A stretch of DNA of 64,000 nt from Thalia democratica (Eukaryota): assembly GCA_965202585.1 (NCBI GenBank), contig OZ241829.1, positions 52,886,001 to 52,950,000 on the forward strand, in the 5' to 3' direction. Positions 6,001-62,802 of the stretch are shown in pieces. The notes beneath the pieces are model-generated. The model made no database searches. It saw only the letters and a program-made list of their open reading frames with translations, and was not told where the DNA came from. The position numbers and the translations under genes are program-made. The first letter of the stretch is position 1. Each line of letters starts with the position of its first letter.

Positions 6001-9000
6001 AATTTTATTAAATAAAAATTTTCCAGTAATCAGTTGATATGATTTTAAATTTTATAGATACATATTGTCCAAAGTTTTAAGATAAACTTTGAGTAATTTT
6101 AAACGTATGAAATATAGTTTTAATACATACACTTAAAAGTATTTTTGTTGCTAGTATAATGTACCTTTTTAAAAAATTATATTATATTATATACAAGATT
6201 AGGTAGCAGTAATACTTACAATAAATATAAAGACATGTAATACAAAATGTTTTATTTATTTATATTTAGTTTACGCACAAACCATATGCCTTAAGTTTTA
6301 TATTCTAATTTATATTAGTTGACTTCCAGCTAATTGAAATACAAGTACATTAAACTGCTAAAAAATTCTGTGCATCTCAAGATTGTAAAGTAAGCTGCTA
6401 GTTATAGGAACACGCTAGTTATAGTAAGCTGCTAGTTATAGGTCTTATACAAAAAACACCTCCCAGTCCCTACTTAAACTCAGTACTATTAATAACGTTA
6501 TTAGAAAACAACTATGTAGCAATTTAAACTTAATGATTTTTAATATGGTGATAGAAAGTGGTTTTTTATCTTTATTTAATAAATATATAGTCCTCTGCTA
6601 TTACAGTGTTGTCTGATATCGCCTTGTGCAGGATCGAGACTGTGTTTAACTCAGGATTATTTTTACGAGCATGCCTATTAGTACTTGTAAGCCATTTGTA
6701 AGCCAAGTATTCTAAGCCATTTGTGCACGCGTAGCGTGCTTAGTAACTAGTTTCGAGAGGCTAGAGCTAGAGGCTCATAAGTTCCTAGCTTTCTTACTAT
6801 TAAAACTAATAGCTTACTTAGAGTTAAATATATTGTAAACGGTTAAACTAGATACTAATTATTTAAACTTAATCTATAATGATGTTATACAAGGCTTTAT
6901 GTATCATATATATATAAACTAAATACTAGTTATTTAAACTTAGTTTATGGTAATCCTTAAATTGAGTATTTTAAGATATACTAGTATAATCCTCAGCTCT
7001 TAATACTAACATATTTGGTTCGTCTGACAATTTATTGGGGCGGTCAGATATGTAAGTCAGCTCAGGATTACGTGCTTGACAAATGACCATGTTTACTAGC
7101 ATCTCTTACTTGACTATGTAACTATTACTATTAATATTATATTTCTAGCATGCTTTACTATGTTTACTAGCCTAAGCTTGCGGCTGAAAAAGGTATGGAT
7201 TTCTTGCTGCTAGTCCTTATAGTCACTTTTACAGTTACAGTTACTTTATAAAAACTTACTATAGCCTACTCAACTGTCGTTAGTAAACAAATGCAAATTA
7301 GCACTTACATTTTTTTACAATGTAAACAACCTACGATCTAAGAAAAGAACGCTTTAAAAAGAAAATAAAAGTTTTGTTGAACGAAAATCAGTAATGCACG
7401 CTTATCGACGTAAAGTTGAAAAGTGCTCTGCTAAAAAACCCAAAAGTACGGGAGGTCAAAAATCTCAATAACCAACTACGCTACTTTCGTGGTGTTATAA
7501 CGTTTCTGCGTTTTTCGAGTGTTTAATAAATCTCTTCAAAACAAGACAAAGCAGATATGCTTACGCTACTAAAATTATAATCTTTACTTACGTTCGTTAA
7601 ACCAATAAAACAAAAAAGTTAGCTATTCAGCACTTAAAGTTTATTTTAGAACTTAATAAATAAAGCGATTAGAAAAAAAAAACATTCACACTCTAGCAAG
7701 CCAGAGCTCGAAGGTTTGCTTGGACGATACTTTTAACTAGATGTATTAGCAATTGCTCTAATTTATCAGTGACTCTTACTAAAGTCAGAGCAAAGCTAAG
7801 ATTTTAAGCGTATCAAACGTCTAAAAGTCCGCTTTGGTTTATGTAGAATAGAAGTTTTTGTATGACTCTTATTGAAGTCAGAGCAAAACTAGCACTTTAG
7901 AAAATACCATCTAAAAACTACGGTAGTTGATCTACAAAATATATCTCTATGTCGCTCTTATTGAAATCAGAGCAAGGTTAGCACTTCAAGCGTATCAAAC
8001 GTCTAAAAGTCCGCTTTGGTTTATCTACAATATAAACCCAATACTTAAGAAACAGTTGTTAAGAAAACAACGAAATGTGAAAAGCATATAGTAAACAAAA
8101 TATAATCTAGGTGACTTTGAGAAACTAAAGTAAAACAACGTTCTTAAAAACATTTTCTAGATCTCGTTTGTTATTAAAAGTAAACAAATACACGATTCTA
8201 ACAAAGTGAAATTTCGTTCACAGAAAGATTGTTTAAGTGCATGTTAAAACCAAAGTTCGCTTGCTTAATCGTAGCGTAGCTTAATCACTTATAACTTTGA
8301 TAAAGTACATCTGCAAGTGCAACGCGTACTCGCTTAGCGATCTTAAACTTCGCTGAAAATTTAGAAATTATACTACCTTTCCTCGCGATGCTTGGCTTTA
8401 AATAGTGTTACGCAACAGTAAAAGCTCTTCTTTTTTATGAATCACTCAGGCGAACAAGCAGCTGATGCTTACAAAGATATTGAAACAAAAAAAAAGACAC
8501 AAAAAGCATTAAAAACAGTTAGATACGTTGAAAGCACTGTATCCTTTGGTGAACCTTGAACAACATTTCTTGGTGTCTAGATTTGTGAACTTAATACTGA
8601 ATTGATGTTTCTGATTGCATATAGTAATATTAGGTGTGAAAAGTATTGCTTTTTGAAAACTAAAAAGTTTTAAACGAATTAAAATATCTTAGTTTAAAAT
8701 TTTTTTTTTCTAAGTTCAGAATTAAATAAATTAAATTATTTAAATTAGCTCTTAACATTTCAGTAAAACGAGCAATCTTTTTTAGTTAAGAAAACAAACT
8801 GTATAAGTTCATAATTAAAAATAGCAATTTGGTTTATAATTTGTTAAGAGAAGTACATGCTTTTATATACTTCTAATATTTTTTTAATTGCATAAAAAAT
8901 TCTAAGATTAATACCTAGATGTAGAAAATTTATGCTTTAATTTTAGGTTAGAGTAATTTTGTTACAATTTCTAGAAAAATATAATTAAGCACATTTGAAA

Positions 9001-15000: not shown

Positions 15001-18000
15001 TTTTTTTATAAGCTTTTTTTCAATACGTAAATATATTTGAAAAGCCGAGAAACTTTAAGTTATAAAAAAGGAACTTGGTATTTGTTATTAGATACTATGA
15101 ACTTAAACTTTTAAGTACTTAAAAAGATTGAATCAAATTATAACCCTCAGCTCTTGATACCAACATTTTACTTGTATCTTCTGACATCAATTTTCGTCGG
15201 TCTGATATGTTAGTCGGCTCAGGTTTACTTGTTGGTATGTGGTTACTAGCATCAAAACCTTTTCAGCGGCTTGAGCACGCGTTGCGTGCTCGGTAATTTA
15301 CCTCGAGCGGTCATAGGCTGACAAAGGTATGGATTACTTGCTGCTAGCACTCATACTCATATTTCAGTGATTAGTGCTACTAATCGTGTAAATGAAAGTA
15401 TGTTACAATTAAACCTACTCTATAAGAGGCCTAATATAACTAGCCTATAAATAAGTGGTAGAAATATAACTTTAGCTCAACTCGGTTAAAATCTACTTAG
15501 TAAAAAAATGCGATTTAACACTCAATATTTATTTTACAATGTAACAATCTACGATCTTAGAAAAGAAACTAAGTAACTCGCTAAATGAAAATTAGTGATG
15601 TGGTCAAAAATATCAATCAATGCCAAATAACAAATAATACTTAGTAAGCGACTCAAAAATATGTCTCAAACATAATTAAAAGTAGTGCTCGAAAACATAC
15701 GCCTAAACCTACGCTAGACTTTACGAAACCCTTAACTTTATACAAGTGAATAATAACTTGAATTAAAAAAACTGTTTAACTATCTAAATTCAGTAAACTA
15801 GTTACTTGTTAAAAAAATCTAATTATTTTGTTATAATATCTAGTTATATATGCTGATTAAACTTTGCTATATACAGGGTTGCCACTTTACCTTGAATCCT
15901 GGAAAAACCTGGAATTTGACAATTTAGGCAAAAATAACCTGGAAAAACCTGGAACTTAAAAAATTTTGAAAAAAACCTTGAAAAACCTTGGATTTTGAAC
16001 AAAAAACCTGGAAAAACCTGGAATTTTTAAGAATTTTAACATGTTCAGTAGTAAAATTTCTGTTTGACTCAAAAAATTTATCATATAGATAAAAAAGTTT
16101 TATCATCACCAAAAATTTTTTTATGAAAAAACACGTTTTTAGTAGCTTTACAGTACCTTTTTAATTTTTCTATACTATTTAACACAGTTTCTTACCTTAA
16201 ATTTAACTTTAAACTAAAAATAGATTCAAGAATGTGTACTTTGAAAAACCTGGAAATTTTTTTGAAAAAACGAGTGGCAACCCTGTATATATACTTTTAC
16301 ACCGTTGTCGAAAATTTTTAGTACTATATTTTAAAAAATATTAAAATAATTGTGAAATATTTTATTGATTTACGACGTTTCGCTGCTCATAAAATTTGAA
16401 CAGATTTACAGAATAAAATTAAATTCAAAAATTATTCACTTTGTAAAGCTGTTCATATTTTATGAGCAGCGAAATGTCGTAAATAGATTAACTATTTGTT
16501 TACAAATACAGTTGTTTTAAAATTTATAGCCCACAAGAAATTGAATCTAAAGGGGAAGTTTTATTTTAATCAAGCTACATCATAAAATTGTCTTACTCAT
16601 AATTAGTTCTGGTCTGTTGTCTGGTACTCGTACGTTAAACGTACATTTTAAACTAACATGGTCATTAAATTCTATGTTTACTTGTTATTATTTTTGATTT
16701 TTTGTAAAATTCCCTTTACCATTTATAAATTAGTGGCAAAAAACAGCGGATTTACGTCAAATGAAACAGATAAATGATGAAGTATCGAATAATCCAGCAA
16801 AATTACGTCAAAAAGTTCTTTCTAACATATCTCCCCAACCACCTGATAGAATACAACATCAGGCTTCTTTTATATCACCCATGGATGATGCTATTGTTGG
16901 TTTTATGTTTTAAAAACATTTTATGTTTTTAAACTATTTTTTTGTTAATTTTATAATTAATATAATCTTTAAAACTTTCATTATACATTTTTAATGATCT
17001 TTCATGTTAATATTGTTTATTAAAAACTATGAGATAGGTTTTTTTGCCATTAAAATGTATACATTTATTTTATAATAATAACAAATTTAAACAGTTCTCT
17101 TTCTTTATTAAACTAACACATGTTTCTGTGTGTTAACAAGTTAACACACTTCAACGAAGCTCTGTAAAAAAAATACTTAAAGGGAAGAATATTATAGTAT
17201 TCTTTCCTTACAGTGTTTATTTTTTATTAGCAAACGATTGACTTTAAATTTTGAATATTTATGTTTATTGCATATTAAGTAATTTAGAAATTGATAGCTA
17301 AATCATAAACTGGAATTTCTGATAGAATTTAAATTTGATCATTTTTTGGCTATTTTGAAATAAAATTCTTATAAGTAAATTGATAAAAATTATAATTGTC
17401 TTTTATGTCTATTAAGATTTTTATTCTTTTTATTATATATTTTTAGGTCTAGATCAGCCGATCGGCAAACTGCTGCATGCGGCCCGCGAATATTTTAATT
17501 TTTGAAATTTGGCCCATGTAACCACTGAATTCTTGCTGACTCCTGGTCTAGATATACATTTACGATTTTAAAAATTGACATTTTAAAAATTGAAAGATAC
17601 TTTTTTTTTGCTAAAGTGCATAGTTTTGTTATTGAGTTTGAACTGTCGGAATTTGAAATTTTATATAACAAAGAAGTTGAATGCACAACGTTAATACAAA
17701 ATATTTTAAAATTAAGAACACTTTAATTATTTTAGCATTAATGGCAGGATACGTTACAAGCGACACCTCGAAACTTTGGTAGAAGTAATCCATTTGAAAA
17801 TAAGCAATCGCATTCACAAAAGTCACAAAAAGATGTTTATAAAGAAGAACTTCAAAAACAAGTTTATAGTACTTTTAACGTTTTCATATTTTTACCAATG
17901 TTGTCTTAGATTTTTTACACTATTTATTGGAAACGGGTCAAAGTTGCACGAAAAAAAAAATTGCACAAGGTTACTAAATTGTGCGAGGGGACTAAATTGC

Positions 18001-21000: not shown

Positions 21001-24000
21001 AAAGAAACGAGTTGAAGCAGAAAAGAGAGAAAAATTACGAATTGAAGAAGAAAAAGAAGAAAGAAGACTTGAAGAGCAAAATAGAAAAATGCAGGAAGAG
21101 TTTGAAGCAGAAAAGCAAAAAAAGCAGGAAAAAATTGATCAAGTTAGTATTATCTTAAGACTTAGTGTATCCTAAGACTAAGATAGGCGCTACGTGCTAT
21201 GTTCTAAAAGATTTAGTTGACTTTAATTGCAATTAAATGAAAAAAAAAAAAGAAAAATATAATAAATTTTGTACTTCAAATTTTGTGAAAAATGTTTATA
21301 TGTATTAAGGCATAAATCGGCTAAATCCTGCTTTTAATGTTTAATTTTAGTGTATATTTAAAATATCAAGTTTCTTAAAAATTAACTTTACAGAATTCAT
21401 TTACACTTATGATTTAATATTTAGAATCTAATTAGTGTAGGCTTCATAACATTCAAAAACTTAAGAAAATTTATATTATATTTTTATAAGATTTAGTGTT
21501 TCGTACTTTATACTTTAAAGGTGGCAATCAAAGTTCTCAACTTAAATAAAAGGAGAATGATCATTAATAAATTTTAAATTTTATTAACAATACAATGTTT
21601 CACTCGTTTGAAAACGATATCTTCAGTTCTTTAAAATCTGTAAAAATTTATATAATAACATGTAGGAAGACATTATGCTAAACTTGAAATAAAAGAAAAA
21701 AAAAGTATATAGCAAAAAACTGAATAAAATCTAAGTAAAATTTATAGCTTAAAGTTACTAGTATATGAAGATTATAATGTTGTTAGGTTAGATTTAGAAA
21801 AATTTTAGTTACTTAATAATTATATAATCTTAAAACTTAAACATACAAATTAAGCAAGGCTACTAAATGTTAGTATAATTATTTATATATTTGTTTAAGT
21901 TTTAAGATTATATAATTATTGAGTAACTTACATTTTTCTAAATCTAACCTAACAACATTATAATCTTCATATACTAGTAACTTTAAGCTATAAGTTTTAC
22001 TTAGATTTTATTCAGTTTTTTGTTATATACTTTTTTTTTTTTTCTTTTATTTCAAGTCTAGCATAATGTTATTCCTACATGATATTATATAATTTTTTAC
22101 AGATTTTAAAGAACTGAAGATATCGTTATCAAACGAGTGAAACATTGTATTGTTAATAAAAATTGAAATTTATTATAGATTTAGTGTTTAACTAATTTTA
22201 TTATACTAAGTTAAAACTTTAAGGCTTAGAACATTATAAAAATAATTATACACAACTGCAAATGCTGTAAGCATTATCTGTTTGTTCCAAGAGACTTAAA
22301 AAAAGAGAAGTGTTTTTTACTCTAGCTTAACACTATATTAAGCCGAATGCGGCTTGAAAGTGGAGTTTTGCTGTTTTATGAATATTCTTGCGTGAAGTTT
22401 TAAACTTACAGCGCAGTTTTTGAATATTGTTGAGCAGAATGTTAAAACTCCCGTTTAGTTAAGCGTCGCAGCTTTTTGTTTAAAGCAAGTGCGCTTTGCA
22501 TCTGCAAGTTCATTCACTTTTCGTTCGGGCTGACTACCATTGTTTGCAAGAATAGTTACGATTAGTTACAATTAAACCAAACGCTCTTTTATTTAGCAGG
22601 CACATTTTAGATTCTTTGTGAATAAAATTTCATTGTTTTTTTAGAAACGTGTATTGTTTGACTTAGTAACATACAAGACCTAGAGAAACGTTTAACAGAA
22701 CGTGTTTCGTTCTAGTTCTGAACGTCACCTAGATTGTATTTTAGCTACTATATGCGTTCAGCTTTCGTTGTTTTTGGCGACTTTTACTCAGCACTGCACT
22801 TATATTGTAGTCCACTGACTTCAGTAAACCGCTAGGAAATGAAAGCAAGTGTAATTCAATACATTTTTAGGCTTTCGTTGATCGCTTACAACCGTTTTTT
22901 TTTTTTGAGCAGTACACTTCTACGGTGGGTCAATCGACCCCTGTAAAAAAGGAAAACTAAAGCAAGTATATATTGATTTGTATCTATTTTCAGCTTTCGT
23001 TGTTTTTTTGACAACTGTTTCTCAAGTAGAAACTTCTATTGTAGTTTAACCAAAGCGGACGTTTAGACGTTTTTACGCTTCAGGTCCTAGCTTGGCTCTG
23101 ACTTCAGTAAGAATTGCTGAGTACTGAAAACAAACGCTAATACATCTAGTAAAAGTTGCTGTGCAAACAAATCAGTGAGCTCTGACTTGCACGTGTGTTA
23201 GTCTTATTTTATCGCTTTATTGTTAAAATTGTAAAATAAGTTTAGGGTGCTTAATCTATATTTTTAGTATTATCGGTAGAGCGTAGATAAGTAAATTTTG
23301 TATAGTTAGTATAATTGTACCGTATATTATTCTATATTAAGATTATGTAGTAACTATAGAAAATTCACTAAATCTGAAATAAAGTGTTTCTTTCTAGTCT
23401 ATATTAAAATCATATATCAGGTTATATATTAGAATAATTATAGACGAAGTTAAATAAGTATTATATAGCTCATATCAAAAGGGGTAGCCTCAGATTTCCA
23501 CTACTTTTTTGAATTGCTTGAAAATCATGCAAATAATTTGCATATTTGCTGAGTCAGCAATTTTAAAAACTTTTATTTCAATAACAAAATTTTATTTTTT
23601 GATTTATATTTTTATGTTTGGGTAAGGTTGGTTAGGGATAAGGGTATAAATATCAAAAAAAAGCTAAAAAAAATATTTAGCTGGTTCAGTCAATATGCAT
23701 GATTTTCAACCTATTCTAACACATTAGTGGAAATTTGAAGCTACCCTGTTAAAAGTCATATTATGCGTTACATTAAATTATTTCATAAAACCACTAGTTA
23801 AATTTAGATAACTACTGTCTAGTTTAGTCACTAATAATATATTTAACTTTTATTAAGATATGAGTACTACCAGTATATAACTTAAGACGCTCTCGGCCTC
23901 TAGCCTTACAAAGCTAGTTTCTAAGCACGCTACGCAATCCCTATTCCCTGAAAAGATGTCAGGTACTAGTAGGCATACTCGTAAAAGTAATCCTTAGCTT

Positions 24001-27000
24001 AATACAGTTCCTGACCAACACAATGTGTTATCAGACAATACTATAATAGCAGAGGGTTATAGTGCAATAAAATTACTTTTTGGTTTTTATAATGAATACA
24101 TGTAGATTTTAAAATAAATTTGTATGGTATTAAGTTGTTATATTTTACTTAATTACATGACTTAATGAAAACTTTTCTAGTTTTTTCATAATTTTTTAAA
24201 TAGAATCGAGTAATTTTTCAAGCGAACCTAAATCTAAGCTGGTATTTGTTTATACATTAAAGTTTATAATAAGATCAGGGTGTCTAAAAGTCTGAAATCC
24301 TGGAAAAGCCTGGAATTTCAAAATTTAGGTTAAAAAAAACCTGGTAAAACCTGGAATTTAAGTAATTTTTACATGTTAAGTAGTCAAATTTCGATTTTAC
24401 GCAAAAATCTGTCATATAGACAAAAAGTTTGTGTCATCATCAAAAATTATTTTTATTAAAAAGCACATTTAAAGTAGCTTTACAGTTGTTTTTATACTAT
24501 TTCACACAGTTTTCTACTTTAAGCTTAATTTTAAACCAAAAATAGACCTTAAAAGGTGTACTTTTAAAAACTTGGAACAAATTCAGTAAACCTGAAAGAA
24601 ATTTCTTAACGACTAGTGGCCACCCTGTAAAAAAATCAATGAATAGATGTGCAATACATCGTGGATCAGTGGCGACGCTTGATGAGTTGCAGGGGAGAGC
24701 GCTTAGCAACATAAACTTCTTCCAATATAATTGTCTCACATACTTATAAATTCTACTTATTTTTGCATTTTTAACATAACTGCATAATTACATCTAAAAT
24801 ACAATAACATTTGTGGTAGTTTGAATTTCTCTGTAACCCCTATAACGTCATAATGCGTAGCCTCTGGTTTATATGTTTTCTAAAAAAAAATAAAGCTTTG
24901 TAACTTTTCTGAGTAATATCATTGCGGTATATAATTGATATTTATTGTAGTAATTTTGAGTTGGTAATTTTTTTTTTCAGAATTCCGTAGAACTGTTTTA
25001 TTAGTTTAATATAAAGAAACGACGTTAGTTTTAAATAAGCAAGGTCATAAAAATTTGTAGTTGTTTTACTTGAACAAACTTTTTGTTCGGATCCTTATTA
25101 GAGTTAAAATTTTTGAACATATTAGTCAAGTCAATCTTTTATTGATTTAACACTAGTGTAGTTTCAAATTCTTGGTTTCAAATCCATGCAAAATAAAAAT
25201 AGTTTTTGCAAAACTAAGTTTATTTTTTCCTGAAAAGGAAAGAAACACTTGTCTTTGATGGAGTTCTTTACAGTTATTAGTCTAAAAAAGAGTCTAATTT
25301 TTGTAATCTAAGTATAAAATAAAAATTTTCTCAGCAACGTCGCAAACACGAAGAACTTCATTTACAAACCGAGGAAAAGAAGAGAGTAGAAAAAAAACAT
25401 AAAAACGAATCTGAAATGATTAGGGAAAAAGAAAATAAAAGTAAAAAGCAAAATGAGATTCATGGAAGCCCTCAACAAGTTTAATATTTAATTTGAACCT
25501 TCAAAAAACTAGTTTTATTATAAAAGTTCAATATTTTTACTTAGTAATTTTTGTTACAATTTTTATTGTAGTATTCTTTGAAAGATTTTAACAGTTGTAA
25601 GTAGAAATGTTTTTTTTTAAATAATTTTAAGTTAAAACGATATATAAAACTATTTAGAAATTCAAAATTTAGAACTACATGTAATTCAAATTAGTTACTT
25701 TTAAAATAATTTCTAAAAAGTTGATTTTATAACTAAAATGGTATTTACAGTTTAATAAGTGCTGTAATTTTTTTGCTCTAATATCTGGTTTTGTTACAGT
25801 AAGAAATGTTTTTCATGCGTTTGTTAGTTGTAATCTTTGTATTTAATTAAAAATGTTTTATTATCCTCATTAGTTTGAGTTTATTTTGAAAAAAAAAAAA
25901 AAATTACTTTAGTGTTTATTCAGTCTATTATCAGACAGCAAGATTAAAAAAAATACAACCAGTAATTGCTGACGGTGAAAAAATTCCAAGAACTCCTGTG
26001 GTTCCGTTCCGAAAAACCTTACCAACTTCAACAAACAAGTCTGATGATGTTAAATTTAGTAACTTTAACAAGTATGTGTTTATATATCGATAATTTTTTA
26101 ATATGATTCTTTACTTAATAGACTGTTTTTATTATTTTTACCTCAAAACATCATTTTAATTTAAAAAGTCTACAAATTTCCGAGCACTAAAAGTTTGAAG
26201 CGCTTTCAAAAGTTTGATTATTATTATCAATAAACTTAAACAAACTAAACTTTCAAATTTTTTTCAAGCAGTTTTATTAAAAATACTAATATATATATAT
26301 ATATATAGTTTATTGCAAATATTTGAATTTGAAAAGGACAGTACATATGTTTCATAAAAACAATAAATTTGTTTAATTCTCAGCTGTAGTTCGAATTGAA
26401 TTGTTCTGTTTTTTAGATTAATCCAAAATTTGCACAAAAAAGCAAAAAACACTAGGAAGTAATTATTAAATTTTGTCGAGGACAAATTTCAGTGCAAAAA
26501 TTATTCTTCCTTTTATCCTAAACAAACAACTAAAATTTACAAAGCTACAAATAAGTGACCATAACATTAAACGTTTAAAAGTTTGGCTCTAATTTTTTTT
26601 CGTCGTGCCTTATTGACCGAAACCTTTAAAAAACTTTAACTAATTATATGAATAAGCAAATTATAAGCACAAAAATGTATAAAACTCGATATAATATCAA
26701 AATATACCTGAGTTCAAAATCCACCCGATCAAAATCTACCCACGTTCAAAATCCACCCGATTTTTTTTATATTTTCTTAATTAATTAATTTTATATATTT
26801 TTTGAATTTTTTTATTTAATTTTTATTTAATTTTCACTATCACTGTTACCCCTAACCCTTACCTTCGAATTTGACCGGGTGGATATTGAACGCGGGTGGA
26901 TTTTGAACGTGTCCCATAAAACTCAATGTTACCTTATAGTAGTATAAACGCATATTTTACAACATTCTATATACAGTTTCCAAATAAATTGCTTACAGTA

Positions 27001-30000: not shown

Positions 30001-33000
30001 AAAACAACCTCGAATTTGGTAAATTTTGAAAAAAAACCTGGAAAAACCTGGAACTTTGAAGAAAAATCACTAAAAAAGCTGGAGTTTTAACAATTTTCAC
30101 ATGTTCAGTAGTAAAATTTCAATTTGACTCAAAAAATATATCATATATATAATAATTTTTTGTCATCATCAAAAAAAAAACATCAAAAGTATCTTTTCAA
30201 TGTTTTTATACTATTTAAACAGTTTTTTACCTAAAACTTAACTTTGTACTAAAAATAGACCCAAAAATGTGTACTTTTAAAAACCTGGAAGACAATTGGA
30301 AAACCTGGAAAAAAATCTGAAAAAACGAGAGGCAACCCTGAATTAACTAAACTTTAATCAGACTATAATCCTCTGCTGTTACAGTTGGGTCTGATAACAC
30401 ATCGTGTTGATCAAGAACTGCATCAAGCTCGGGATTACCTTTATGAGTTTGCCTACTAGTACCTGATGCATTCTCGGCCGGTTGGGCACGCGTAGCGTGC
30501 TTATTAACTAGCTTTGTAAGGCTATTGGCCGAGAGCGCCTTGGGTTTTTTACTGGTAGTACTCATAGCTTACTATAAATAGAATAACTTATTTGTGACCA
30601 ACTAGATTGTATCTACGTTTAACTAGTTGTCTTGAGATATTTTTAATGAAACGTTTTATACAACTTTTAATATTAACTATCGTACTTATTTAACTTAGTC
30701 TACGAAGATTCTAATATTTACTTAATATATAATCTTAAATTAGACTATAAAGTAAATCCTTAATTTAATCTTAGTGATTTCAACGTATACTTCGCTATAT
30801 AGTTTTAATAGAGAACCAAAAAACGATACATTAATTAGATTAATATTACACTTACTTGATTACTTTTTACTCTTAATACTAAAAGTATAGATTCGGCACT
30901 CTAAATTTATTTTACAATGTTTAAGAACAAGCGATAAAAAATAACACTCACACACATGCAAGTCAGAGCTCGATGGTTTGTTTGCAAGGCAACTTTTATT
31001 AAATGTATAAGCCTTTGTTTAGTCCTCAGCTATTCTTACTTAAGTCAGAGTCAAGCTAGGACTTGAGGCGTATGAAACGTCTAAAAGTTCGCTTTAATTG
31101 AACTACAATAGAAGTTTCTACTAGGAAAACGGTTGTTAAAAAAACAACGAGCTGAAAATCAATACAGGTCGAAATATACACTTGCTTCCGTTTTTCGGCG
31201 ATTCTTACAGGAATATAATTCACTGTAGAAGTGTAGAGCTCAAAAAACGGTTGTAGCGAACTACGTAAGCTGGAAAGTGTAATGAACTACGTTTGCTTTA
31301 GTTTTTCGGCTATTCTTACAGGAAAATAATTCACTGAAGAAGTGTTAAGCTCGAAAAGCGGTTGTAGCGATCAACGAAAGCTGGGAAGTAAAATGAATTA
31401 CACTTGCTTTCGTTTCTCAGCGATGTTTATTGAAGTCAAAGGACTACAAAATAAAGTGCAATGCTGAGCAATAGTCGCTAAAAAACAACGAAAGCTGAAT
31501 GTATATATTCGCTAAAATACAACTTAAGTGATATTAAATGTGATTCTAACAAAAAATAATGAAAGCTAGTTCACTAAGAATCTAAAAAATGCCTGCTAAA
31601 AACAAAAGAGCGTTTGCTTTGATTGTAGCGTATTATAACTATGCTTGCCAACAATGTTAGCTAGCCGAAACAAAAGCGATAACGAATGACCCTGTATAAC
31701 CCTCACCTCTTACAATATCTTCTCTTATCTTAATTGGCTCAGGGTTTATAGTTGGTTTGTGATAACCAGCGTCCATACCTTCCTCAGCATCAGTAACTAA
31801 CCTCGAGCGGTTGTATACTGACACAGGTATGGATTTCTTGCTGCTAGTGCTCATACTCAAATTAGTGCTACTAATCGTGTTAGTGAGAGTATGTTACAAT
31901 TAAACGTATTCTACAGAAGGTCTAATATAATCTAGCCTATAAATAAATGCTAGATATATAAGTTAAGATTAACTAGGTTAAATTCTAGTTAGTAAATGAA
32001 TATGAATTAACACTCAACGTTTATTGTACAATGTAAAATTCTACGATCTTGGAAAAGAAACTAAATGACTCGCTAAATGAGAATTAAGAATATTAGCAAG
32101 AGTATGAATCAATGCCCAATAACAAAATAATGCTTAGTAAACGACTCAAAAGTACGTCTTAAACATAATCAAAATAGTGCTCGAAAAATAAACACATACG
32201 CCTACCCCTACGAGAACATAAATTAATGCCAACTAATATTAATGCTAACGCAACCACGTTACGGCCATCACGACTACAACGACTCAACTACCACGCTTGA
32301 TCTCTCTCGCGGTGATTTTTATACCGTTTTCGCGTTTTTTTTGCGTTTTTTATACTCTCTTCAGAACAATATGTGCAGCTATCGTTACACCTGCAAATGC
32401 AACTCGCTTTAAACAAAAAGCTGCGACGCTTAACTACGACAGAAGTTTTAACATTTTACTCAAGAATATTTAAAAACTGTAAAAAAGTCTCCCCTTTTGA
32501 GCCGCGCTCGCTTTATATAGTGTTAAGCTACAGTAAAAAGCTCCTTTCTTTTTTTCAAGTCTCTCGAAACTAGTGATGTACCGGACTCACTATCCGGGTC
32601 CGGATCCGGCCGGATATTGCCATTTTTGTCTGATATCCGGATCCGGCCGGATTCTAATTTGAAAAAAAAGTCCGGATCCGGTTCCGGCCGGATTCTAATT
32701 TGAAAAAAAAGTCCGGGTCCGGTTCCGGCCGGATTCTAATTTGAAAAAAAAGTCCGGATCCGGGTCCGGCCGGATCCTAACAGAGATCCGGCCGGACCCG
32801 GATCTAGTTAGTAAAAAAGAGCATACTGAAAAGTATTTTTCAAAAACAAACCCTGTGTAAATTAATAAGAGTTATTTTCGTCAGTTAAAATTAAACACCT
32901 ACCGTGATTGGCTCATTTTCTAAACGTGACTAATTTACATTTGTTTACATTTAAACTATGAAATAAACATTTCATGAAATGCAACTCTTTACATATGTTA

Positions 33001-42000: not shown

Positions 42001-45000
42001 GTTTGCACAAAAAGAAATTGACTTTGCTGGAATTACCATTACTAAATCTGAAATTAAGCCACAAGAAAAGTTTATAAAAGCTATAAGGGATTTTTCTATA
42101 CCCAAGTCAATAACAGATGTCCGATCTTGGTTTATCAAACATCACATTATAACCAATTGAAATATTTGATGACTAAGTTGAAAACGTTTTAAGTCCCAAA
42201 ACAGGGTTATACTGGAGTTATGAGCTAGAACAGTGGTTGGCACGGTGTACACTGGTGCACACTGGTGCACACTTAAGTACATGAATTTCTTTTAGGGTGC
42301 ACGAGACTTTTGGGGTGCATGAAACTTATTTTGGGGTACATGAATTTTTTTTTTTGTGCAGAAACTAAGTTAAAGTTTTTTTTTGAATCTTTCTATATTT
42401 AAGACATATTAAACCTTGATATCTAATTGCTCATTTTGTTGTTAATATAACGACCAGTTTTGTATTCTCCTAGTTCTATTCTGTTACATTATGTAAAAAT
42501 TCTTCCACCCTTAGCCGCCCAAAGAAAAACCGAAGTGAGCAAATCTCATAGATTCTTAAAACAAAATAAAACGGTTAGTATTCTATTAATGTTTAATTCT
42601 ATTAACTCTTATTGTTTAAAAGCGTTTTGTTACATTAAAAATTACTATATTAAACAGCATAATCAACTGATATTTGACAAAAAATTAGTTAGGCCAAAAA
42701 AATTCAATTATGTTTTACTTGTAAAAAAATTAAAATATAGAAAGGGTCAATAACATCAGGGCTGTCACATACTTAGCTCTCTAAGAATAATTAAGTCTAG
42801 TTTTAAATCATGAAAAGCCTAGACCAACTGAGGCTAGTTTTAGTATATTTACAAAAACTCAGCTTGACTGAGACTAGTTATAAATTTAATGAAAATCTTG
42901 GGTTTATTTTGATATCTTTTAAAAATATTCAACTGTTGCTTTACTTGAATTTTTTAAACTTGTAATTAATTATTATTATTAATACCGAATGATTAGTAAA
43001 AAAAGGATTAAAAGTGTTTAAATATTCTTAAACACTAGCGGTGCTAAAGAATGCAAATTGGAGTGCACAGAATTTTAATTTTGAGATTTAGGGTTCACGG
43101 ATTCGAAGTAGCGTGCCGGCCACTGAGCTAGATGATACATTCTACTAATCAAAAGAAACTATAGTTGTAGCCATAACAAAGGGAATACAAATTTTCGATT
43201 TGGTAAAGCCCACTTGTATTTAACCAGACTGGTCCACAACTAGTATTGGTTAATTTTTATCGCAAAAACACTTGCTGTTATAGCTCTGCTGTGCCAGGAT
43301 GTTGTCAAGCTGGATAGCGTATTGTTTTGGCAGGCTCTCGTTTTCTTAGAACTCCAGAATCATGTTATGCTGCGGTAGAGGGAGAAAGCCTTGCAATTGT
43401 TTGGGCACTTGAGCATCACGGTATTTTTCACAAGGATGTAATAATTTGATGATTCTGACTGATCACAAACCACTGGTAAAATTGTTTGGAGACAAAACAC
43501 TTGATGAGATTGCAAATCCCCGCCTTTTCCGGTTGAAGCGGAGAAGTCTTTTGTGGCGATTCAAGATGCTACATAAACCTTGAAAATTACACTTTACCTC
43601 AGATGCAATGTCACGTCATCTAGTGGAAACCATTTATCAAACAACATATGAAGTTGAGATAAGTGAGTGTATCATTGCAAGTCATCAAGTAGGTGATAAT
43701 TTTCAAACTGTGACTTTTGACCGAATTAAAGAAGAAATTTTAAAAAATAAACAAATAATGAAGCTTTTTCATTATATTAAAACTGGTTTTCTGGAGACCG
43801 AAGACCACCTACCATTAGAATTGCATGAGTTTTTGATAATTCGCTATTCTTTATTTATGATGGATGGCGTCATCATGTGTGGCGATCGTAAAAGAAAACT
43901 GGATCATAATAAGCTTCTACCATCTAGCAGTATATTTCAGGATGATGTGAGTAGAATAGTTATTCCTCCATCATTAAGAAAAGAGGTTCTTAGAGTGCTG
44001 CATTCTGCTTATCAAGGGTTCACTGCAATAAACGAGCGAGCAAACGCGATTGTTTACTGGTCGGAAATAACAAATGACATTTAAGGTGTTCGGGAAAATT
44101 GCAATAGTTGTAACTTAATTGCACCAAGCAATCCTCGTCTACCCCCAAATGAACCATTAATTCCAAAACTTCTTTTTGGGATCAATTGTCTGTGATTATT
44201 TTCATTTCAAAGGGTGCTATTATTTTGTAGCTGCTAAAAGACGGTCTGGCTGGACAAAGAATTAAATTAGGTACAAATGAGTCTGGTTCAAAAGGGCTAT
44301 GTAAAGCTTTGCGTCGTGTTTTTGTCACTTTTCGTGTTTCAGTTAAAATATCTTCAGATGGTGGTCGAGAGTTTTCTTCAAAACTTACCAAAATTTTCTA
44401 AAACGATGGGGTATACACCATCGTATTTCATCTGCATATCATCCTATGTCAAACGGTAGGGCGGAACTAGCAGTAAAGGCCACTAAGCGATTGTTAATGA
44501 AAAACGTTGGTCCAAATGGTGAACTAAATAACGACAGAGTTGTACAAGCTTAATGTAATCACACAAATCTCAAATATGTGGCGTAACACATGGAGTAGAA
44601 AGGAAGAGGCTCTCAGGTCTCGCTATGTTAAGTTTTTGAAAATTTAAGTGAGCACACAAAATCATTGCCACCACTGAATTGCGGTGATCATGTCATGACA
44701 CAAAACTAAACAGGTAACTTTCCTAACAAGTGGGGGAAAATGGATTAGTAGTGGAACTAAAAGACTATCACAAATATGATGCTAAGGTTAGTGGATCTGG
44801 TCGCTTAACTTTTCGAAATCGTAAGTTTCTAAGGAAATTTTGGCCACCTGGTTGGAAATCTCTAAGCAGTATGTATTCCTTATCTGAAAAAAGCAAACAC
44901 ACCACTGCAGAAGTTTGTCTTTTCTGGTAATTATGAGAAAAATGATTTTCATGTCAATTTTGATTTTCTGCGCTCTCAGAAGGTAACTATAGCAAGATTT

Positions 45001-50733: not shown

Positions 50734-53700
50734 TCATTCTGAGACATAATTTTCAGGTTGATTATGGCCTGTTTTTTCAAGAGTTGTTGTTTTAAAGCTT
50801 AAGTGAAAGGAAACATAAAAATTGAATATACTTTGCTCAGTAGTTCAAAGCATCTCGAAAGATCAAATCTACTAAACTCTTAGAGATTAGAATTGTTTGT
50901 AAATTTGAGTTTTTTTTTTTCATTTGAAACACTTTTTAACTTTATGTGATGGTAAGTTTTTCATTATGTAACTTAAAGTGATATATTTAAACTACCTTGC
51001 AAAAAAGTTTAACTAGCTCTTTTTTTAAAGCCTCAAACTGAACAAATACATACAAAAAAAATTAACACGTTTTGTAATAAATTTAAACATTGTTATAAAT
51101 CTAAATGTAATATATTGTATAATACATAGTTTTAAATGCGAAAGCATTTTTGCATACATAAGTCGAATATTGTTATTCTTTATAAAAGTTTAAATAATTT
51201 ACTTGTTCATACTAGCAGATGTTTTTCTTTTACGGGTACCTTTACTAAACATATTTCCCCACTCCTCGACTGCTTCAGCTATTTTTAGTGGATTAGCTCC
51301 TAATAAATAAGCTAGTTAACTTTCAATGATCGGAAACATTTTTTTAGCTAGATTTAAACCACTTATATTTTGTAGCACTTAAAATAAAAATTTTTAGCAT
51401 TTTTATACAGATTTAACTTTACTTGGATTTTGAAGTGTATTTCAGGAGAAAAATTATGAGAAAATACCTTATACTGTAAATTAACTTTTTTGTTCACATC
51501 TCAAAAATTATTGTGAAAATAAAAACTTTTATAGGACTATATGTTTATAAGCTTTTCGATAAATACTGTGACAAACTTTTGACAAGTTTCAGATATTCTC
51601 TTGGTTTTTGCAATGAAAAAATGCATTCATCTATTTCTAGCTTATTTTGCGTAAAGTTTGTTTCGTCATTATCATCATGATATATTTTTCTCAAATCATT
51701 TTTGTTCCAAGCTGCAAGTACTTTTATTGCCGTATCTATTGTAAACTCGCAATCGGTGTATATATCTGTGTTCTAAATAAATTACAAATAAATCTAAATG
51801 CACTTTTTGTAACTTAATTAGAATTTTAAAACTTTTAAGGTATGACTAATCTATTTCTTATCAGGTAATGTGTTTAAAAAAAAAGAATAACATTTAACTA
51901 ATATAACATTTATTTTATTTTATTTCAAAAAATCAACAAAGTTTTTACTTTAAACTTATTAGTATCAACCAAATTAATCATATTAAAATTTAAATATTGT
52001 TGGTTTTTCTGAAGTATAATATTTTTGTACATAGTAAACAAGATAAAAACATAAATTACAAACAACGATTGACATACCAGAATAACGATTTGAGAAACTT
52101 TAATATTAAAGTATTATTACTGTAATTTAAAACTTTGTTTACTATATACTTGAACATATCCAAAAATTTCCTCAGCAAGAACTTTTTCTCTATCATCTAC
52201 AACTTTAGCAAGTAACTCGAACAATTGACCTAATTGCTTTACCCCAATCATTTCAGGTCCAAGCTCCGGCCTATATATGCGTTCCTTAAAATTTCAGAGT
52301 TTTGTAGTTAAATGATTAAATGTATTATAACAAACTATGTACATAATTACTTTTTTTAAAACAGTGAGTTATAATCAAAACAAATTTACTTTACTTATGT
52401 AACGTACAAAGTTTATAAAACTTACAGCGCATGATTTCATCGATTTGCATTTAGCTTGTCTTAAGCATGATTTCTGTAAAAAAATTCTATATAAGCAACA
52501 TCATTTAGTCAATTAGAAAACTCTAAGATAAGTTTAAAGACTTTTTTTTATTCAACTGCAATTAATTAATTAAGAGTAAACATCATGCAATAATCTCAAG
52601 TTAATAACTTAAGTTTTGGTGTATGTGTCGAGTGCTGGTTTTAAATCTACAACTTCAAATTTTAAGTATTTTATGTCATTAGGACCCCATCGCCACCACA
52701 TCACAATTCGAAAAAGTTTTATCAATAGTAGAAAAAAAAGCTAATAAATTTTTGATTTGTTGATTTGATTATAACTGAGTATTAGCATAAGTTTTTTAGT
52801 TTACTGTGTTTAAATAAGTAAAAACTTACTTTATTACTTTTTCAACAAATACTAATTCTACTTGTTAGAAAAGAGGTTTTTATTAGGCGAAAATATTTTA
52901 TAATAGTTGTATAAATTCTTTGTAGTTAATAATATTTAGTACTCTTAAAGCTAATTTTGATGGTATATTTATATTCTCTGGCTGCTTTATGAATAAACAA
53001 ACCAACAAGTATAAATTTAAATAAATGTTACATAAAAAATATTTGTCATACCAAAAAGAAAACTATATTTACATAAAATTTGTTGTTTTCCTACTGTGGA
53101 CCTGTTTGCCAGTATTTACTAAGAAAACTCAACTTACTATGCATTTTTACTAAAACTAAAAAAATATGTTAGTATATTTAAAATAAGTATGTTTTGTACT
53201 GCCTCAAAAACTTATAATACACACCTTTACTTAAATAAAGTACTGAAAATTGCAAAAAACCCATAGCTGGTTTCTTAAAGTTAAATGCTCAAAAGAATAA
53301 TTAAAAAATATATAGTTGTCTTATAATTCTCTACTATTACAGTATCGTCTAACCAACACACTGTGTTGGTCAGGAACTTTGTAATCTTAGGATTACTTTC
53401 ACGAGTATGCCTACTAGTACCTGACGTTTTTTAGCTGATTAGGCACGCGTAGCATGCTTAGAAATTAGCTTTGTAAGGCTAGAGGCCGAAAGCGTCTTAA
53501 GTTTTTTACTAGTAGTACTCATAGCTTAATATAAATTAAATATCTCATTAGCGACTAAACAAGACATCAGTTATCTAATTTAACTAGTGGTCTTAAGATA
53601 TAATTCAATGTAACGTTTAATATAAGCTATATATTACTTATTTCACTTAGTCTACAGCAGTGGCGTAGCGTGGTATTTTGGTCAGGGGTGTGCAAATTTT

Positions 53701-58138: not shown

Positions 58139-61100
58139 CAGGGGTCGGCAAACTGCGGCCCGCGGGCCAATTGCGGCCCGCGAAGGGTAAATCTGCGGCC
58201 CGCGAGAACGTTATTTTTGAATGGAATGCGGCCCGCAAAAGAAAATTTTGTGGCCCGCGAGCATGTAAATGTGGCCCGCTGAACAAAAATATATTTCAAG
58301 TTAAATTCTTTCGGTAATTCGATTGAATTTAATCAGTTTGGTTTTAAGTCTCTGTAAAACATTTTTAAATAATAAGAAGAAATTACTGCTTTAGTTTAAA
58401 AATTTTAAAAAGACAGATTAGCATTCTAACATGATTTTTTCTTAGTTTCATAATAACTTCTTTTTTACAACAGCAAATAGTTTTCTGAAAAAAGAGTGTA
58501 AAGTGTGCTTAAATTTAATAAGTTAATTACATAATACCTATTTATTTATTAAATAAACTAAATGTAAATGTTTTCCATTTTGTACAAAAGTAATGTACAG
58601 TAATTAACTCAAGAGTCATTTGTTTATAGCTTAGATATTCTTTTTGAATATTTTTTATACCTAAGTTTCTTTTATATATTTTTTTTTGTAAATGATAAAT
58701 TTTAGTTTAAAAGCATTTAAAATAACATTGTAATAAGAAATAATAAGAAATAAGGTTTATTTGATTTTTGTTTTGACACATTTTAATTTTTTAGAAGTTT
58801 TTTTTGCACTTTAAATTAATTTCTATGCACACCAACTTAAAAAGATGCTCATATTTTAAACCACTTTTTATTTAATATTTTAGTTAGTTTAAGTTTAGTT
58901 TATGCATAATTTTCTAACATTTATTTTACTACATGTAATATCTAAATTTGTACGGACACACTCAAAACAACATATATGACATAAATTAATATAATTTTTG
59001 TTAGGTATACACTTTCATTTTTCAAACATTGTTTTTGTCAAACTAAGTTTTTTTTTTATCTTTTGCATATCAATGCACACAATTGCTGTTTTTTGGAGCT
59101 ACCTATTTAATATAAACTAGATTTAGGGATGGTAAGTTTATTAAGTTTGTATATTGTTATTCAAAATAGTTCAAATTTAAGCAAATGAACAACTAAATAT
59201 TGCCAAACACTCAGACTATCTATATTTGAAGACTTTAAATCTCAGGGCAACTAAGTCATCTTATAAGTTTTTGGCTAGAATTGCTTTTTGTTTACAAAAA
59301 CATCAGGAATGTTTTTGTTGACTTAGGCTGGATTTTTTGCTTGAAAGAGTTGCATATTAAACTTATGATGTATGTTTTGCTCAATCCACACTGTGGATTC
59401 CACATTTTTAGTTTGAGTTATAAAATATATTAAATTTTAAGTCTTGCAGTTGATATAATTCAAAATATTATTTATATTATTGTGCACATTTAAGTGTGAA
59501 CAATCAGTGTTGCCAAAAAACTTGAATCCCTGAAAATCTTTGAATTTGAAAATTTATGATTAAAAATTCTGGAAAAAAACTTGAATTTGAGAATTTTTGA
59601 AAAAACCTGGAATTTCAAACAATTTTTACATATAAAATTTCGATTTGAAACAAAAAAGTTAGCAAATAAACATTTGTTTATTAAAAAAAAAATTAAAGTA
59701 GCTTAACAGTATTTTTCAAAATTGATATACTTTTTAAGACATTTTTTTTAAACGTTAATTAAACTTTATACTAAAAATAAAAGAAGGAATTGTACTTCCA
59801 AAAACTTTGTATTGGGGCATTGCACCTCAACTTGTAAAATTTCACCAATGGTTGTGCTTCGCGTTGGAACTAAACCAAGAAATTCTACTAAAATGTCAAA
59901 GTTATTAAAAACATATCTTATAAAAATTCTAAGATGAGCAATAGTTTTTCTATTAGTGCGATCATGTTAACAGATTGATTAAAGTACTAATTTGATTCAT
60001 GCAAATTTATAACCTTAATGCATTTCCTAAACACGACTACTTGTTGTCATAGAAGAAATAAACAAAAGTTTTTCATTACCACTAACATAAATTATTTAAA
60101 AAAGTTTTCAATTATAAACGGAATCTCATTTTAAGTAATAGATTTTGCTACTTTATAACTTGCCTTGACAATTTTTTTCTGATCATTTGTAGTTACTGAA
60201 GATAATCATGTGCTTTGTTGGAACTGACTTTGGTAATTTGTTTTTTTATCGTTTCTCGCAATAACTCCTAACTAACGTTTTTTTATTTTTGCTTAATAAA
60301 AAATAAGTTTTTCTACTTCGGTAATGACTCAATAAAGTTTTATACTTTTGCTAAAATTGTTAAACAAAATTAATTATCCATTCCAGCTGACTTATATATT
60401 TTTTGGCTTGTAATTTATTTAATGTTAATAACCTTCGTTATTTCTTTATGTTATTTTAACTGGGTTGCTACACAAACAGGCTACTTTAAAAGCTTGAAAA
60501 CTCAGGTATGTGTGAGAAACTTTTATTTCAAACACTTTAAAGAAATCTTTTAATTCTCAGAATACTTTTTATGACTGATCTGTAATTTCTTCTTGTTTTC
60601 TTAAACTTTGTGTACTTTTAGATAAAGATGATATTTTTACTAGGTATTTAAGCTTGATTAACAACTATTTATTAATTTTTCCAATTTTTAATAAACTTAG
60701 GCTGGTTTGATACAACTCAGACATTTTTGATTTCTAAGTGGCAACCATGTACAAGACTAAATACTAATAAAATACTTTATTAAAGTATTCGAAAATTATT
60801 TATTTTCAAAAATTTGTTCTAGTTTTTTGGAATACAAACAGGAATTTTATTAAGTTAACTAATTACTAAATTTTTTAATGAATGTAAACTATTTAACACG
60901 CAAAAACTTTTTTGAAAGTAAATATTCTTAAAAATATTAAAAAAGGGTTGATAACATAACAAATATATAAAAGTAACCCATAAATTATCTTTCAAGTTTG
61001 GTTTTTATAGAGAGTCAGGTTGTAACTAAAATTACAAAAGTATTAACTTATTAAGTGATTATGAAAGTACATAGTTTATTAACACTCAAGTATATTAGTC

Positions 61101-61322: not shown

Positions 61323-61783
61323 ATCTAACTAAACAAACAACTAAAATTCACAAAAACTTCAGTTAAATGTTTATAAAATACTTTAAAGTTTATTTTATTT
61401 CAAGAGTAGATTTTTCATATGTCTACAAGACGATATGAATTCATTCCTCTTATTAAAACAATCTTCCTTTTTCAACGCATACGCAACGGCTGTTGATTTT
61501 TTAAGCACAGCTTACAAACAGGGTTATTACTATCTGCAATTGGCTGTGGGTTATCACATTATATGTGGCATATGCCAATAGCAGATAGTAATAACCCTGT
61601 TTGTAAGCTGTGCTTAAAAGAATCAACAGCCGTTGTGTATGCTTTGAAAAAGGAAGTTTGTTTAAATAAGATAAGTGAATTCATATCGTATTGTGACATA
61701 TGAAAAAGCTCCTCTTGAAATAAAATAAATTATAAAGTATTTTATAGTCACTTAACTGTAGTTTTTGTGAATTTTAGTTGTTT

Positions 61784-62802
61784 TATAACCCTCTGCTGTT
61801 ATATTCCTCTCATCTATTTTATAAGGTTCTGTTGTTGTTGGATTGTTTGTTGACATATTAGAGTCTGTATTCAGCTCGGGGTTACTTTGTTGGGCGCGTC
61901 TACTAAAACTTACCGCCTTATCGGCCGAAAGTGCACGCTTCGCGTGCTTATTAACCAGATTAATGAGGTTGGTTGTCGAAAGGATTTTGGGTTTCTTACT
62001 AGTGGTACTCATTGTTCGAGGTGTTGACCAAACTTAGAGATTCCGCAATGGAATTCACCGCAATTAACCGAGGCTGGTATCAGTAATGCGGACTGGAAAT
62101 GAGGTGTGATGAACCGAATTTGGTCTTGGTGATGAGAATTAGAATACACCGCAATTAACCGAGGCTGGTATCAGTAATGCAGACTGGAAATAAGGTGTGA
62201 TAAACCGAGGCTGGTCTTGGTATTACGTTGATGACTTACCGTAGTCGAATTAAAGTAGTATATAACTTATTTAATCAAACGTTATTTTTAGTAATTAAAA
62301 GGTTAGCTTACAATATACTAATTTTAATAACTGAATTTACTTAACTATATCTTACTGTTATTAGACAGCAACTTAGCACTCAAAATTTAATCTACAATTA
62401 AAAATACAACACAATATAAAAAAGAAACACTCACACACGTTCAGGTCAGAACTCGAATGGTTTGTTTGTCAGTACTTAACTAGATGGAATCGAATTTGGT
62501 TTTCCTTAAAACGTTTCGAACCAACTGAATGAATCAAGGAAATGAAACTAAGTCAAAAGAGCCGAATCGAATGACTAGGTCGAAACTGTCACAATCCAAT
62601 GATAACTTCAAAATGGCCGCCTTCGTCTAAATGCCTGCGTTGAATGTCTTCTAAAATGCACAAGTCACTGAATGCTTAAGTCGAATGTCTACATTAAAAG
62701 CCTCAAATTACAATGCCTACGCCCTTCTCGCGGCGCTTGATTTTTTGCTACACGCAAAAAAAGACTCCTCTTTTCTCTCGGAAAGCAGGCGCAATGCTTA
62801 CA
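61784..62802 (-). mobile_element. LTR-like family copy 6, single diverged unit
   Basis: TGTAAGC at 62802, GAGGGTTATA at 61784; flanks GTTT/GTTC; intact ORF 62012-61752; GTGAGT donor near 62435. Confidence 0.85.

Follow-up and report, generated by a model that had tools for sequence, protein, structure and literature searches.

The window analysed here, a stretch of 64,000 nucleotides from the genome of Thalia democratica (G000:C5:52886001-52950000; genome 802 Mb, G+C ~27%), holds almost no long open reading frames (ORFs) and carries six related intervals, c1 to c6, that are very probably solo long terminal repeats (LTRs) or LTR fragments. Left behind by LTR-LTR recombination, they would represent three sister families of one Ty3/gypsy-type retrotransposon lineage in which gag starts inside the LTR. 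The copies in the window are themselves ordinary relics; the lineage to which they belong is an unusual variant of Ty3/gypsy. The original prediction, made from the letters of the window, had described a single six-copy family and had read it either as solo LTRs of a retroelement whose spliced 5ʹ untranslated region (UTR) and gag start lie inside the LTR or as an undescribed class of non-autonomous element. When the window was compared with its longest copy, all six intervals were recovered as related repeats, and the relatedness of the six therefore stands. The single family does not, and is replaced by three sister LTR families: type A (c1, c3, c4 and c5), type B (c6) and type C (c2 and a copy nested within c4).

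Other parts of the genome contain young relatives in complete form, as Ty3/gypsy-type elements of ~8.7-13 kb with two LTRs. On contig C8, a pair of c6-like LTRs flanks a 4-kb internal region that is itself repeated, with the match beginning at base 1-2 after the TTATA of the LTR in more than 12 copies. The young subfamily B2 (loci L041-L049), whose members share 91-99% identity, has LTRs of 1163-1198 bp that run TGTAAGC...GAGGGTTATA and are followed, one base later, by TGGCGTCCTTAACC. Its stop-free frame of 650-659 codons opens at an ATG 251-290 nt inside the LTR and crosses both the LTR end and the primer-binding site (PBS). A whole-genome protein search found this gag frame intact in at least nine copies. 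In at least six elements, a lone copy of the first 97 gag codons lies 7.5-12.5 kb downstream of the full frame; these lone copies correspond to the 3ʹ LTRs, and the element length given above follows from them. Furthermore, the pattern consisting of the LTR end, any one base (N) and TGGCGYC occurs at 34 places in the genome, compared with 0 for the control. LTR pairs around gag with a PBS next to TTATA, which the original prediction had named as the structure to look for, were thus found in families B, B2 and C2, and it is for these families, not for type A, that pairing with an internal region is established.

The PBS, TGGCGTCCT, begins 1 nt after the LTR, and 9 nt of it are complementary to a tRNA 3ʹ end plus CCA. 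The genome contains 110 copies of a tRNA 3ʹ half with the anticodon GTT (loop ..TGTTAAT..) that end in ..CCCGAGGACG (final letters ..GAGGACG), and, judged by this complementarity, the priming tRNA is tRNA-Asn(GTT). One locus bears on the same point from another side. At C6:53866535-53866592, on the plus strand, a tRNA-Asn 3ʹ half is followed by CCA, C and the reverse-complemented LTR end (three overlapping pattern matches), and in the pattern-match coordinates C6:53866475-53866592 an LTR end with its PBS faces this joint. The fusion probably records a tRNA primer that was still attached to minus-strand strong-stop DNA, and a relic of this kind would be direct genomic evidence for the priming tRNA of the family.

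Within the window, the ORF reported to run open to the LTR terminus does so in three copies, all on the minus strand. It spans 67 codons in c4 (30364-30565, ATG at 30565), 76 codons in c6 (61784-62012) and 53 codons in the nested type-C LTR (31695-31854), and it is broken in c1, c2, c3 and c5. In c6, where the LTR is not followed by an internal region, the frame runs on for 10 codons of flank before a stop. P0002, a 563-aa Gag found in a public assembly, matches the 67 residues encoded by c4 with its own residues 1-67, gapless and end to end (63% identity, E 5e-23), and continues ..TAEGY-NGVLQRP.. into the capsid core. The c6 ORF is 53% identical to the N terminus of B2 Gag. Translated together, the LTR end and the PBS give the signature "..GY | N/S-G-V/I-L", which five public relatives show at 9-86 residues from the first Met, and this indicates that the lineage as a whole starts gag inside the LTR. 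The proposal that the copies are solo LTRs carrying the start of gag is accordingly borne out by complete relatives with the same ends and a PBS, by their intact gag ORFs and by the match to P0002.

The Gag protein itself is known from few sources. It has no match in Pfam, its core has none in a sequence search of the PDB, and a look-up by language model returned Retrotrans_gag with a score of 0.92, which serves as a lead only. A word-based protein search yielded 4 close relatives, and a full HMMER search of 1.84 billion proteins only 40, none longer than 621 aa. The family is narrow in public data, with no gag-pol outside this genome among the relatives found. The AlphaFold model of the Gag core (pLDDT, the model's own confidence score, 87.5; 28-sequence alignment) was more informative. 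Compared with solved structures by VIA-align, its top ~35 rows were almost all retroelement or retroviral capsids at Z 5-8.3, led by Copia (8.3), PEG10 (7.9), Arc (7.2), murine leukaemia virus (MLV; 7.1) and Ty3 (6.0), and including Rous sarcoma virus (RSV), dArc1, PNMA2 and human immunodeficiency virus type 1 (HIV-1). In the model, residues 1-80 resemble the capsid lobes of retroelements, and residues 82-155 have the SCAN domain as their only match (Z 4.3); the best Foldseek match, to the C-terminal domain of Arc, was weak (E 0.34). On the strength of this model, Gag would qualify as having the retroviral capsid fold, the Z values being moderate and the list of neighbours coherent. In the young family, the core bears the mark of purifying selection: the first, second and third codon positions show 9, 7 and 24 variable sites, respectively, an excess at the third. 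The C-terminal third is rich in N, R, G and Y and has no zinc knuckle. A separate observation concerns P0014, a 621-aa protein from a public metagenome or assembly, in which KH domains (Pfam KH_1, E 1e-17) come after a related capsid core (E 5e-28); retroelement Gags usually carry a zinc knuckle at this place.

Downstream of gag, the pol frame lies at -1 relative to gag and opens 40 nt before the gag stop. A slippery heptamer, G_GGA_AAC, occupies the overlap in the register that is correct for -1 slippage, and -1 frameshifting is predicted to take place there. Pol starts with ~400 residues, made up in part of 40-aa tandem repeats, before a DTG aspartyl protease at residues 443-522 of the pol ORF (Pfam E 4e-5). 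In L041-L049 from about position 3780 (for example, G000:C1:62426890-62429119), these repeats form arrays of a 120-bp (40-aa) unit that extend over 0.3-2.2 kb upstream of the protease and stay in frame in several copies. The start of reverse transcriptase (RT) follows the protease, and the placement of RT rests on this start, whose best solved relative is Ty3 RT (4OL8, E 5e-13). The integrase core rve scores above the Pfam cut-off ~1200 residues into stop-free frames of 1500-1580 aa at C8:49104697, C10:13855384 and C10:22506474, ~550 residues downstream of the RT start and in the same frame. As read from these matches, the order of pol is protease, RT, integrase, which is the order of Ty3/gypsy. 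Membership of Ty1/copia was considered and rejected: integrase lies downstream, not upstream, of RT.

The ends of the copies were as first described. TGTAAGC opens c1, c3, c4 and c6, and GAG(G/A)(G/A)(T/C)TATA closes all six. These ends are fixed across the genome, since among 30 further copies 28 5ʹ ends and 15 3ʹ ends abut unrelated flanks, and a 22-mer of the LTR 3ʹ end has 99 genomic matches when up to 2 mismatches are allowed, whereas its reversed control has 0. The target-site duplication (TSD) is exactly 4 bp: in 14 curated copies with both ends, 41 of 56 flank positions match, whereas shuffled flank pairings give 17.0 +/- 3.7 matches and none of 5000 shuffles reaches 41. Lengths of 3, 5 and 6 gave no signal in the same copies. 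The genome-wide tabulation of termini and TSDs proposed with the original prediction therefore upholds both. Five copies, namely c1, c3, c4, c6 and the nested type-C LTR, show what is expected of solo LTRs, with both termini, one TSD and neither a PBS nor an internal region adjoining; the 3ʹ flanks of the solo LTRs in the window are mutually unrelated and lack the TGG-PBS.

Several observations weigh against this interpretation. Neither the 15 sampled 3ʹ ends nor the pattern search revealed a type-A LTR with a PBS next to it, and for this reason the link of type A to an internal region rests on the sister families and on P0002. The missing junction fits the age of the family, as the type-A copies are old (76-85% identity). 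Of a polypurine tract there is a hint only, in a G-rich 12-mer at one loose contig end before an LTR start. In the young family, the part of gag encoded by the LTR is almost neutral, with 8 synonymous-only against 26 non-synonymous variable codons, although it stays open despite this variation. Pfam does not recognise Gag. All families end their LTRs in TA rather than the canonical CA; non-canonical LTR ends do occur within Ty3/gypsy, and the TA end alone does not exclude membership. Finally, the transcription start, the poly(A) site and frameshifting are predictions from sequence.

A long leader free of ATG precedes gag in this lineage. Over the 875-943 nt between the start of the LTR and the gag ATG, none of seven B2 LTRs has an ATG, whereas permuted triplets each occur 55-169 times in sum in the same leaders (AGT, TAG, TGA, GTA and CAT 109-169 times) and the next 875 nt of B2 gag contain 21-24 ATGs per copy. 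One ATG is present in the 790 nt upstream of the gag start of c6. Counted on aligned copies, ten type-A LTRs have 3 ATG sites common to half of the copies, compared with 28-33 for AGT, TAG and GTA; within the AT-rich stretch of the leader, shared ATG sites number 0 and those of the other three triplets 12-14. That stretch taken alone has 0 ATG in B2 and in B (c6), against ~4.7 expected. Family C is the exception, with two ATGs common to both copies at the start of the stretch. The avoidance of ATG, the AT-rich stretch included, fits an unspliced leader that is scanned.

The AT-rich stretch also contains a conserved block. In c4 this block (30906-30951, minus strand) consists of GTGAGTGT and a T-run at a putative splice donor (30951), with AATAAA 40 nt later. 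Types A, B and B2 all conserve GTGAGTGT, the T-run, ~20 nt and then TGTAAAATAAA (ATTAAA in c6), so placed that the putative donor lies 40-44 nt upstream of AATAAA/ATTAAA. Since an LTR needs a poly(A) signal and AATAAA/ATTAAA is the sole conserved candidate, the block can be taken as the poly(A) region, and it would then mark the R/U5 border. The AT-rich stretch is most likely the region of that border, carrying the poly(A) signal and retained in the translated RNA. Further upstream, a TATA box (TATATAAAG; 32511-32519, minus strand) lies ~80 nt from the 5ʹ end of the c4 LTR, and types B2 and C have a TATA-like motif at the same distance. In the young element L041, whose LTR spans 336-1499, this motif is at 410-421, AATAAA at 783-788 and the putative intron between about 738 and 984; an Rfam scan of L041 returned no match.

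These features suggest how an element of this lineage would be expressed. Transcription would start shortly after the TATA box ~80 nt into the LTR and yield an RNA whose leader runs for 0.75-1.2 kb without AUG; the absence of AUG is seen in the sequence, and its function is proposed. Gag may then begin at the first AUG of the RNA, which lies 160-290 nt upstream of the LTR end, and translation would cross the integrase attachment end (..AEGY) and then the tRNA-Asn primer site (N/S-G-V-L) to reach the predicted two-lobed capsid domain and the tail, which is rich in N, R, G and Y and lacks a zinc knuckle. Slippage by -1 at G_GGA_AAC would produce Gag-Pol, in which protease is followed by reverse transcriptase and then integrase, and integration would generate the 4-bp duplications.

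An alternative account of the AT-rich stretch, contained in the original prediction, holds that it is a spliceosomal intron in the 5ʹ UTR, running from GTGAGT or GTATGT to a pyrimidine-rich AG, which is spliced from the gag mRNA and kept in the RNA that is reverse-transcribed. The GTGAGT, GTATGT and CACTAAC motifs are present where they had been described. In four families a donor hexamer falls exactly at the transition from GC to AT (GTGAGT in A, B and B2, GTATGT in C), the stretch closes on acceptor-like sequences (TTTCCAG in B and B2, ACTAAC..TTAGTAG in C), both shared ATGs of family C fall inside the putative intron, and the position of the conserved TATA, ~80 nt into the LTR, points to a long leader. 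However, the stretch shares the ATG avoidance of the leader as a whole, being ATG-free in all seven B2 LTRs and in c6 and having no shared ATG site among the ten type-A copies, and selection against upstream AUGs within it places it in the translated RNA. The putative donor belongs to the longer conserved block that ends in AATAAA/ATTAAA, as fits a poly(A) region, and within type A its GT is kept no better than its neighbours, contrary to the excess conservation that splicing had been expected to leave. No genomic copy or contig lacks the stretch precisely, and a comparison of L041:300-3300 with contigs of four runs gave DNA-like coverage only, with no joint at the putative intron. A search of sequencing runs returned no RNA run containing the sequence. 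The spliced 5ʹ UTR is therefore unlikely, although the survival of an intron through reverse transcription, once thought to need explaining, is no obstacle, because retroelements copy unspliced RNA. Word searches of the literature returned nothing specific on gag starting within an LTR or on introns in gypsy LTRs.

The identity of the units themselves has also been open to other readings. Type-A units might be non-autonomous elements that move as a single LTR-like unit, with integrase acting on one-LTR DNA. The absence of a type-A LTR-PBS junction from the sampled 3ʹ ends and the pattern search agrees with this, as does an ORF-less 1.2-kb variant with both termini at several unrelated loci. 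Nevertheless, the loss of full-length copies is to be expected in a family as old as type A, sister families with the same termini have full-length copies, and P0002 joins a type-A-like N terminus to a translated PBS. To our knowledge, no mechanism copies a lone LTR. This reading is thus very improbable, and the undescribed non-autonomous class does not survive the finding that protease, Ty3-like RT and integrase follow gag in the young family. Ginger elements share the TG start and the 4-bp TSD, which would speak for the copies being pieces of such a transposon with terminal inverted repeats (TIRs); segmental duplications are the remaining option. Yet the 5ʹ end TGTAAGCATT and the reverse-complemented 3ʹ end TATAATCCTC are unrelated and form no inverted repeat, the flanks are unrelated at every copy, and the relatives carry a tRNA primer site as well as genes for Gag, protease, RT and integrase. 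Ginger or another TIR transposon is refuted by this retroelement gene set and by the missing terminal inverted repeats, and the chance that either option is correct is close to nil.

Solo LTRs of a Ty3/gypsy-type lineage thus remain the preferred reading, and the lineage shares with Ty3/gypsy (Metaviridae) the direct LTRs, the 4-bp TSD, the tRNA primer site by the 5ʹ LTR, a Gag with a predicted capsid fold, a proposed -1 frameshift to protease-RT-integrase and an RT whose best match is Ty3. As in Ty3/gypsy solo LTRs, the original TSD remains at the flanks. Unlike in Ty3/gypsy, the LTR here ends in TA, gag starts 160-290 nt inside it so that the U5 end and the PBS are coding, and the PBS, for tRNA-Asn, is only 8-9 nt long. 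The AUG-free leader of 0.75-1.2 kb, the N/R/G/Y-rich Gag tail in place of a zinc knuckle, the ~40-aa repeats that open pol and the lack of a detected chromodomain are further differences from Ty3/gypsy.

The Gag ORF of Ty1 likewise starts inside the 5ʹ LTR and crosses the LTR border, with only a few dozen coding nucleotides in the LTR. In the present lineage, by contrast, 53-97 codons are LTR-encoded and the order is protease-RT-integrase. The PBS of yeast Ty1 lies inside the GAG ORF (PMC4974528). Ty1 (Ty1/copia, Pseudoviridae) differs in having integrase before RT, tRNA-iMet as primer and a 5-bp TSD. The layout is known from yeast Ty1, and its enlarged form in a Ty3/gypsy lineage of a marine animal indicates that it arose more than once.

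Retroviruses offer a second comparison. They must ignore a 5ʹ poly(A) signal downstream of the start site, have a GTGAGT-like donor nearby, and use unspliced RNA both as gag mRNA and as genome; in HIV-1, human T-cell leukaemia virus type 1 (HTLV-1) and foamy viruses, the intron continues past the LTR, and the gag start is downstream of the PBS. The lineage would resemble HIV-1, HTLV-1 and the foamy viruses in all of the first three respects, with a donor-like GTGAGT near its candidate poly(A) signal, and differs from retroviral leaders in that the candidate intron is wholly inside the LTR. Penelope-like elements with retained introns would be alike in having an intron, putative here, in a terminal repeat. 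Unlike those elements, the present ones have neither a GIY-YIG endonuclease nor a Penelope-type RT, and they have true LTRs with a PBS.

If the preferred reading holds, the lineage is a clean case of extreme genome compaction, as one stretch serves as U5, integrase attachment site, PBS and Gag-coding sequence, and its AUG-free leader of 0.9 kb provides a simple sequence signature for which ATG is used. A more far-reaching version may be put forward tentatively, and with more doubt than confidence. It would see here a Ty3/gypsy lineage, so far undescribed, whose Gag-coding sequence takes in the final 160-290 nt of the LTR together with the integrase attachment end and the primer site for tRNA-Asn, and in which translation depends on the AUG-free leader of ~1 kb. 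GTGAGT, 40 nt upstream of AATAAA, would act as a U1-binding site or alternative donor that silences the 5ʹ poly(A) signal, and a Gag without a zinc knuckle would swap RNA-binding modules, with the N/R/G/Y tail here and KH in P0014.

The LTRs are unevenly distributed in the genome. Across nine chromosome-scale contigs, 80 of 97 mapped 3ʹ-end matches fall inside one interval of 15% length per contig, whereas a uniform spread would predict 37 +/- 2.5. This concentration in one region per chromosome-scale contig explains the presence of six copies in 64 kb. As a guess, the clustering reflects retention in a low-recombination, perhaps pericentromeric, region. A chromodomain was considered as the cause of one cluster per chromosome and set aside, as none was found in B2 elements; scoring of 150 of the 168 genome candidates for PF00385 gave 66 matches, none of them in the young B2 elements. 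Contig C3 returned no match from any search.

For annotation, the six intervals should be masked as Ty3/gypsy solo LTRs of three families with nested insertions, and not as genes or as a new class. Among the type-A copies, c1 (6586-8473, minus strand) is a decayed solo LTR with a TSD of AATA/AAGA on the plus strand (3 of 4 positions); it carries a short patch resembling the type-C 3ʹ end at 6985-7074. The solo LTR c3 (22266-24061, plus strand) has two stops in its ORF, a TSD of ATGC/GTGC, an extra internal segment of 267 bp at ~23482-23748 and GTTAGT in place of GTGAGT. Only the last 336 bp of a type-A LTR are present in c5 (53322-53657, minus strand), at 85% identity to the end of c3. A type-A variant of 1.2 kb lacks the whole gag-coding segment and keeps the last ~17 bp (..CAGAGGATTATA); its occurrence at several unrelated loci (L031, L032, L033, L006, L010 and L012) indicates that it spread after the deletion.

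The longest copy, c4 (30364-34433, minus strand), is a type-A solo LTR with a perfect TSD (AGAC/AGAC) and is composite, measuring 1533 bp after removal of two nested insertions. One of these is a complete type-C solo LTR of 695 bp (31695-32389, minus strand) that runs TGTAACG...GAGGGTTATA and has its own perfect 4-bp TSD, CCTG/CCTG. The GTATGT at 32199, the CACTAAC and the second ATG (32199-31854) belong to this nested LTR and not to the type-A unit. The other insertion, at ~32571-34408 in the 5ʹ part of c4, is an unrelated non-autonomous TIR element of 1.8 kb and not LTR sequence. It has inverted termini of ~17 bp (TAGTGATGTACCGGAC), arrays of 41-bp subterminal repeats at both ends and a target duplication of ~7-8 bp (GTTTCGA), features by which it looks hAT-like. 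The tandem repeats described near 31180-31440 were found in the type-A leader as 2.2 copies of a 111-bp unit (31182-31424, minus strand).

The remaining copies belong to the other two families. The type-C LTR c2 (15139-15745, minus strand) has an intact 3ʹ end (GAGGGTTATA) and a 5ʹ end that is truncated or diverged. The type-B solo LTR c6 (61784-62802, minus strand; 1019 bp, TSD GTTT/GTTC) is nearest, at 82% identity, to the LTRs L037 and L039, which flank gag-bearing internal regions. An LTR fragment absent from the earlier list lies close by at 60095-60505 on the minus strand, with 72-77% identity to the sister LTR of locus L050 (G000:C5:18318800-18328799), where two LTRs stand 8141 bp apart. 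L050 is a tandem array of LTR and internal region with a period of 8141 bp and, by genome matches, at least four units. The gag ATG of this sister family is mutated to ATA, and its internal region contains a C-type lectin fragment (Pfam Lectin_C, E 1.3e-4, L050:5757-6176).

Other repeats share the window. A dispersed repeat (62-78% identity) adjoins three LTR copies, at 15943-16305, 24501-24627 and 30003-30340, in inconsistent relative orientation, and is taken as an unrelated family. In the G+C-richer stretch of 40-46 kb, an ORF fragment on the plus strand (43584-44081) has a weak Integrase_H2C2 match (E 4.6e-4) and is probably a remnant of another Gypsy element. Inverted repeats pair 42.4-43.1 kb with 48.6-49.1 kb of the window.

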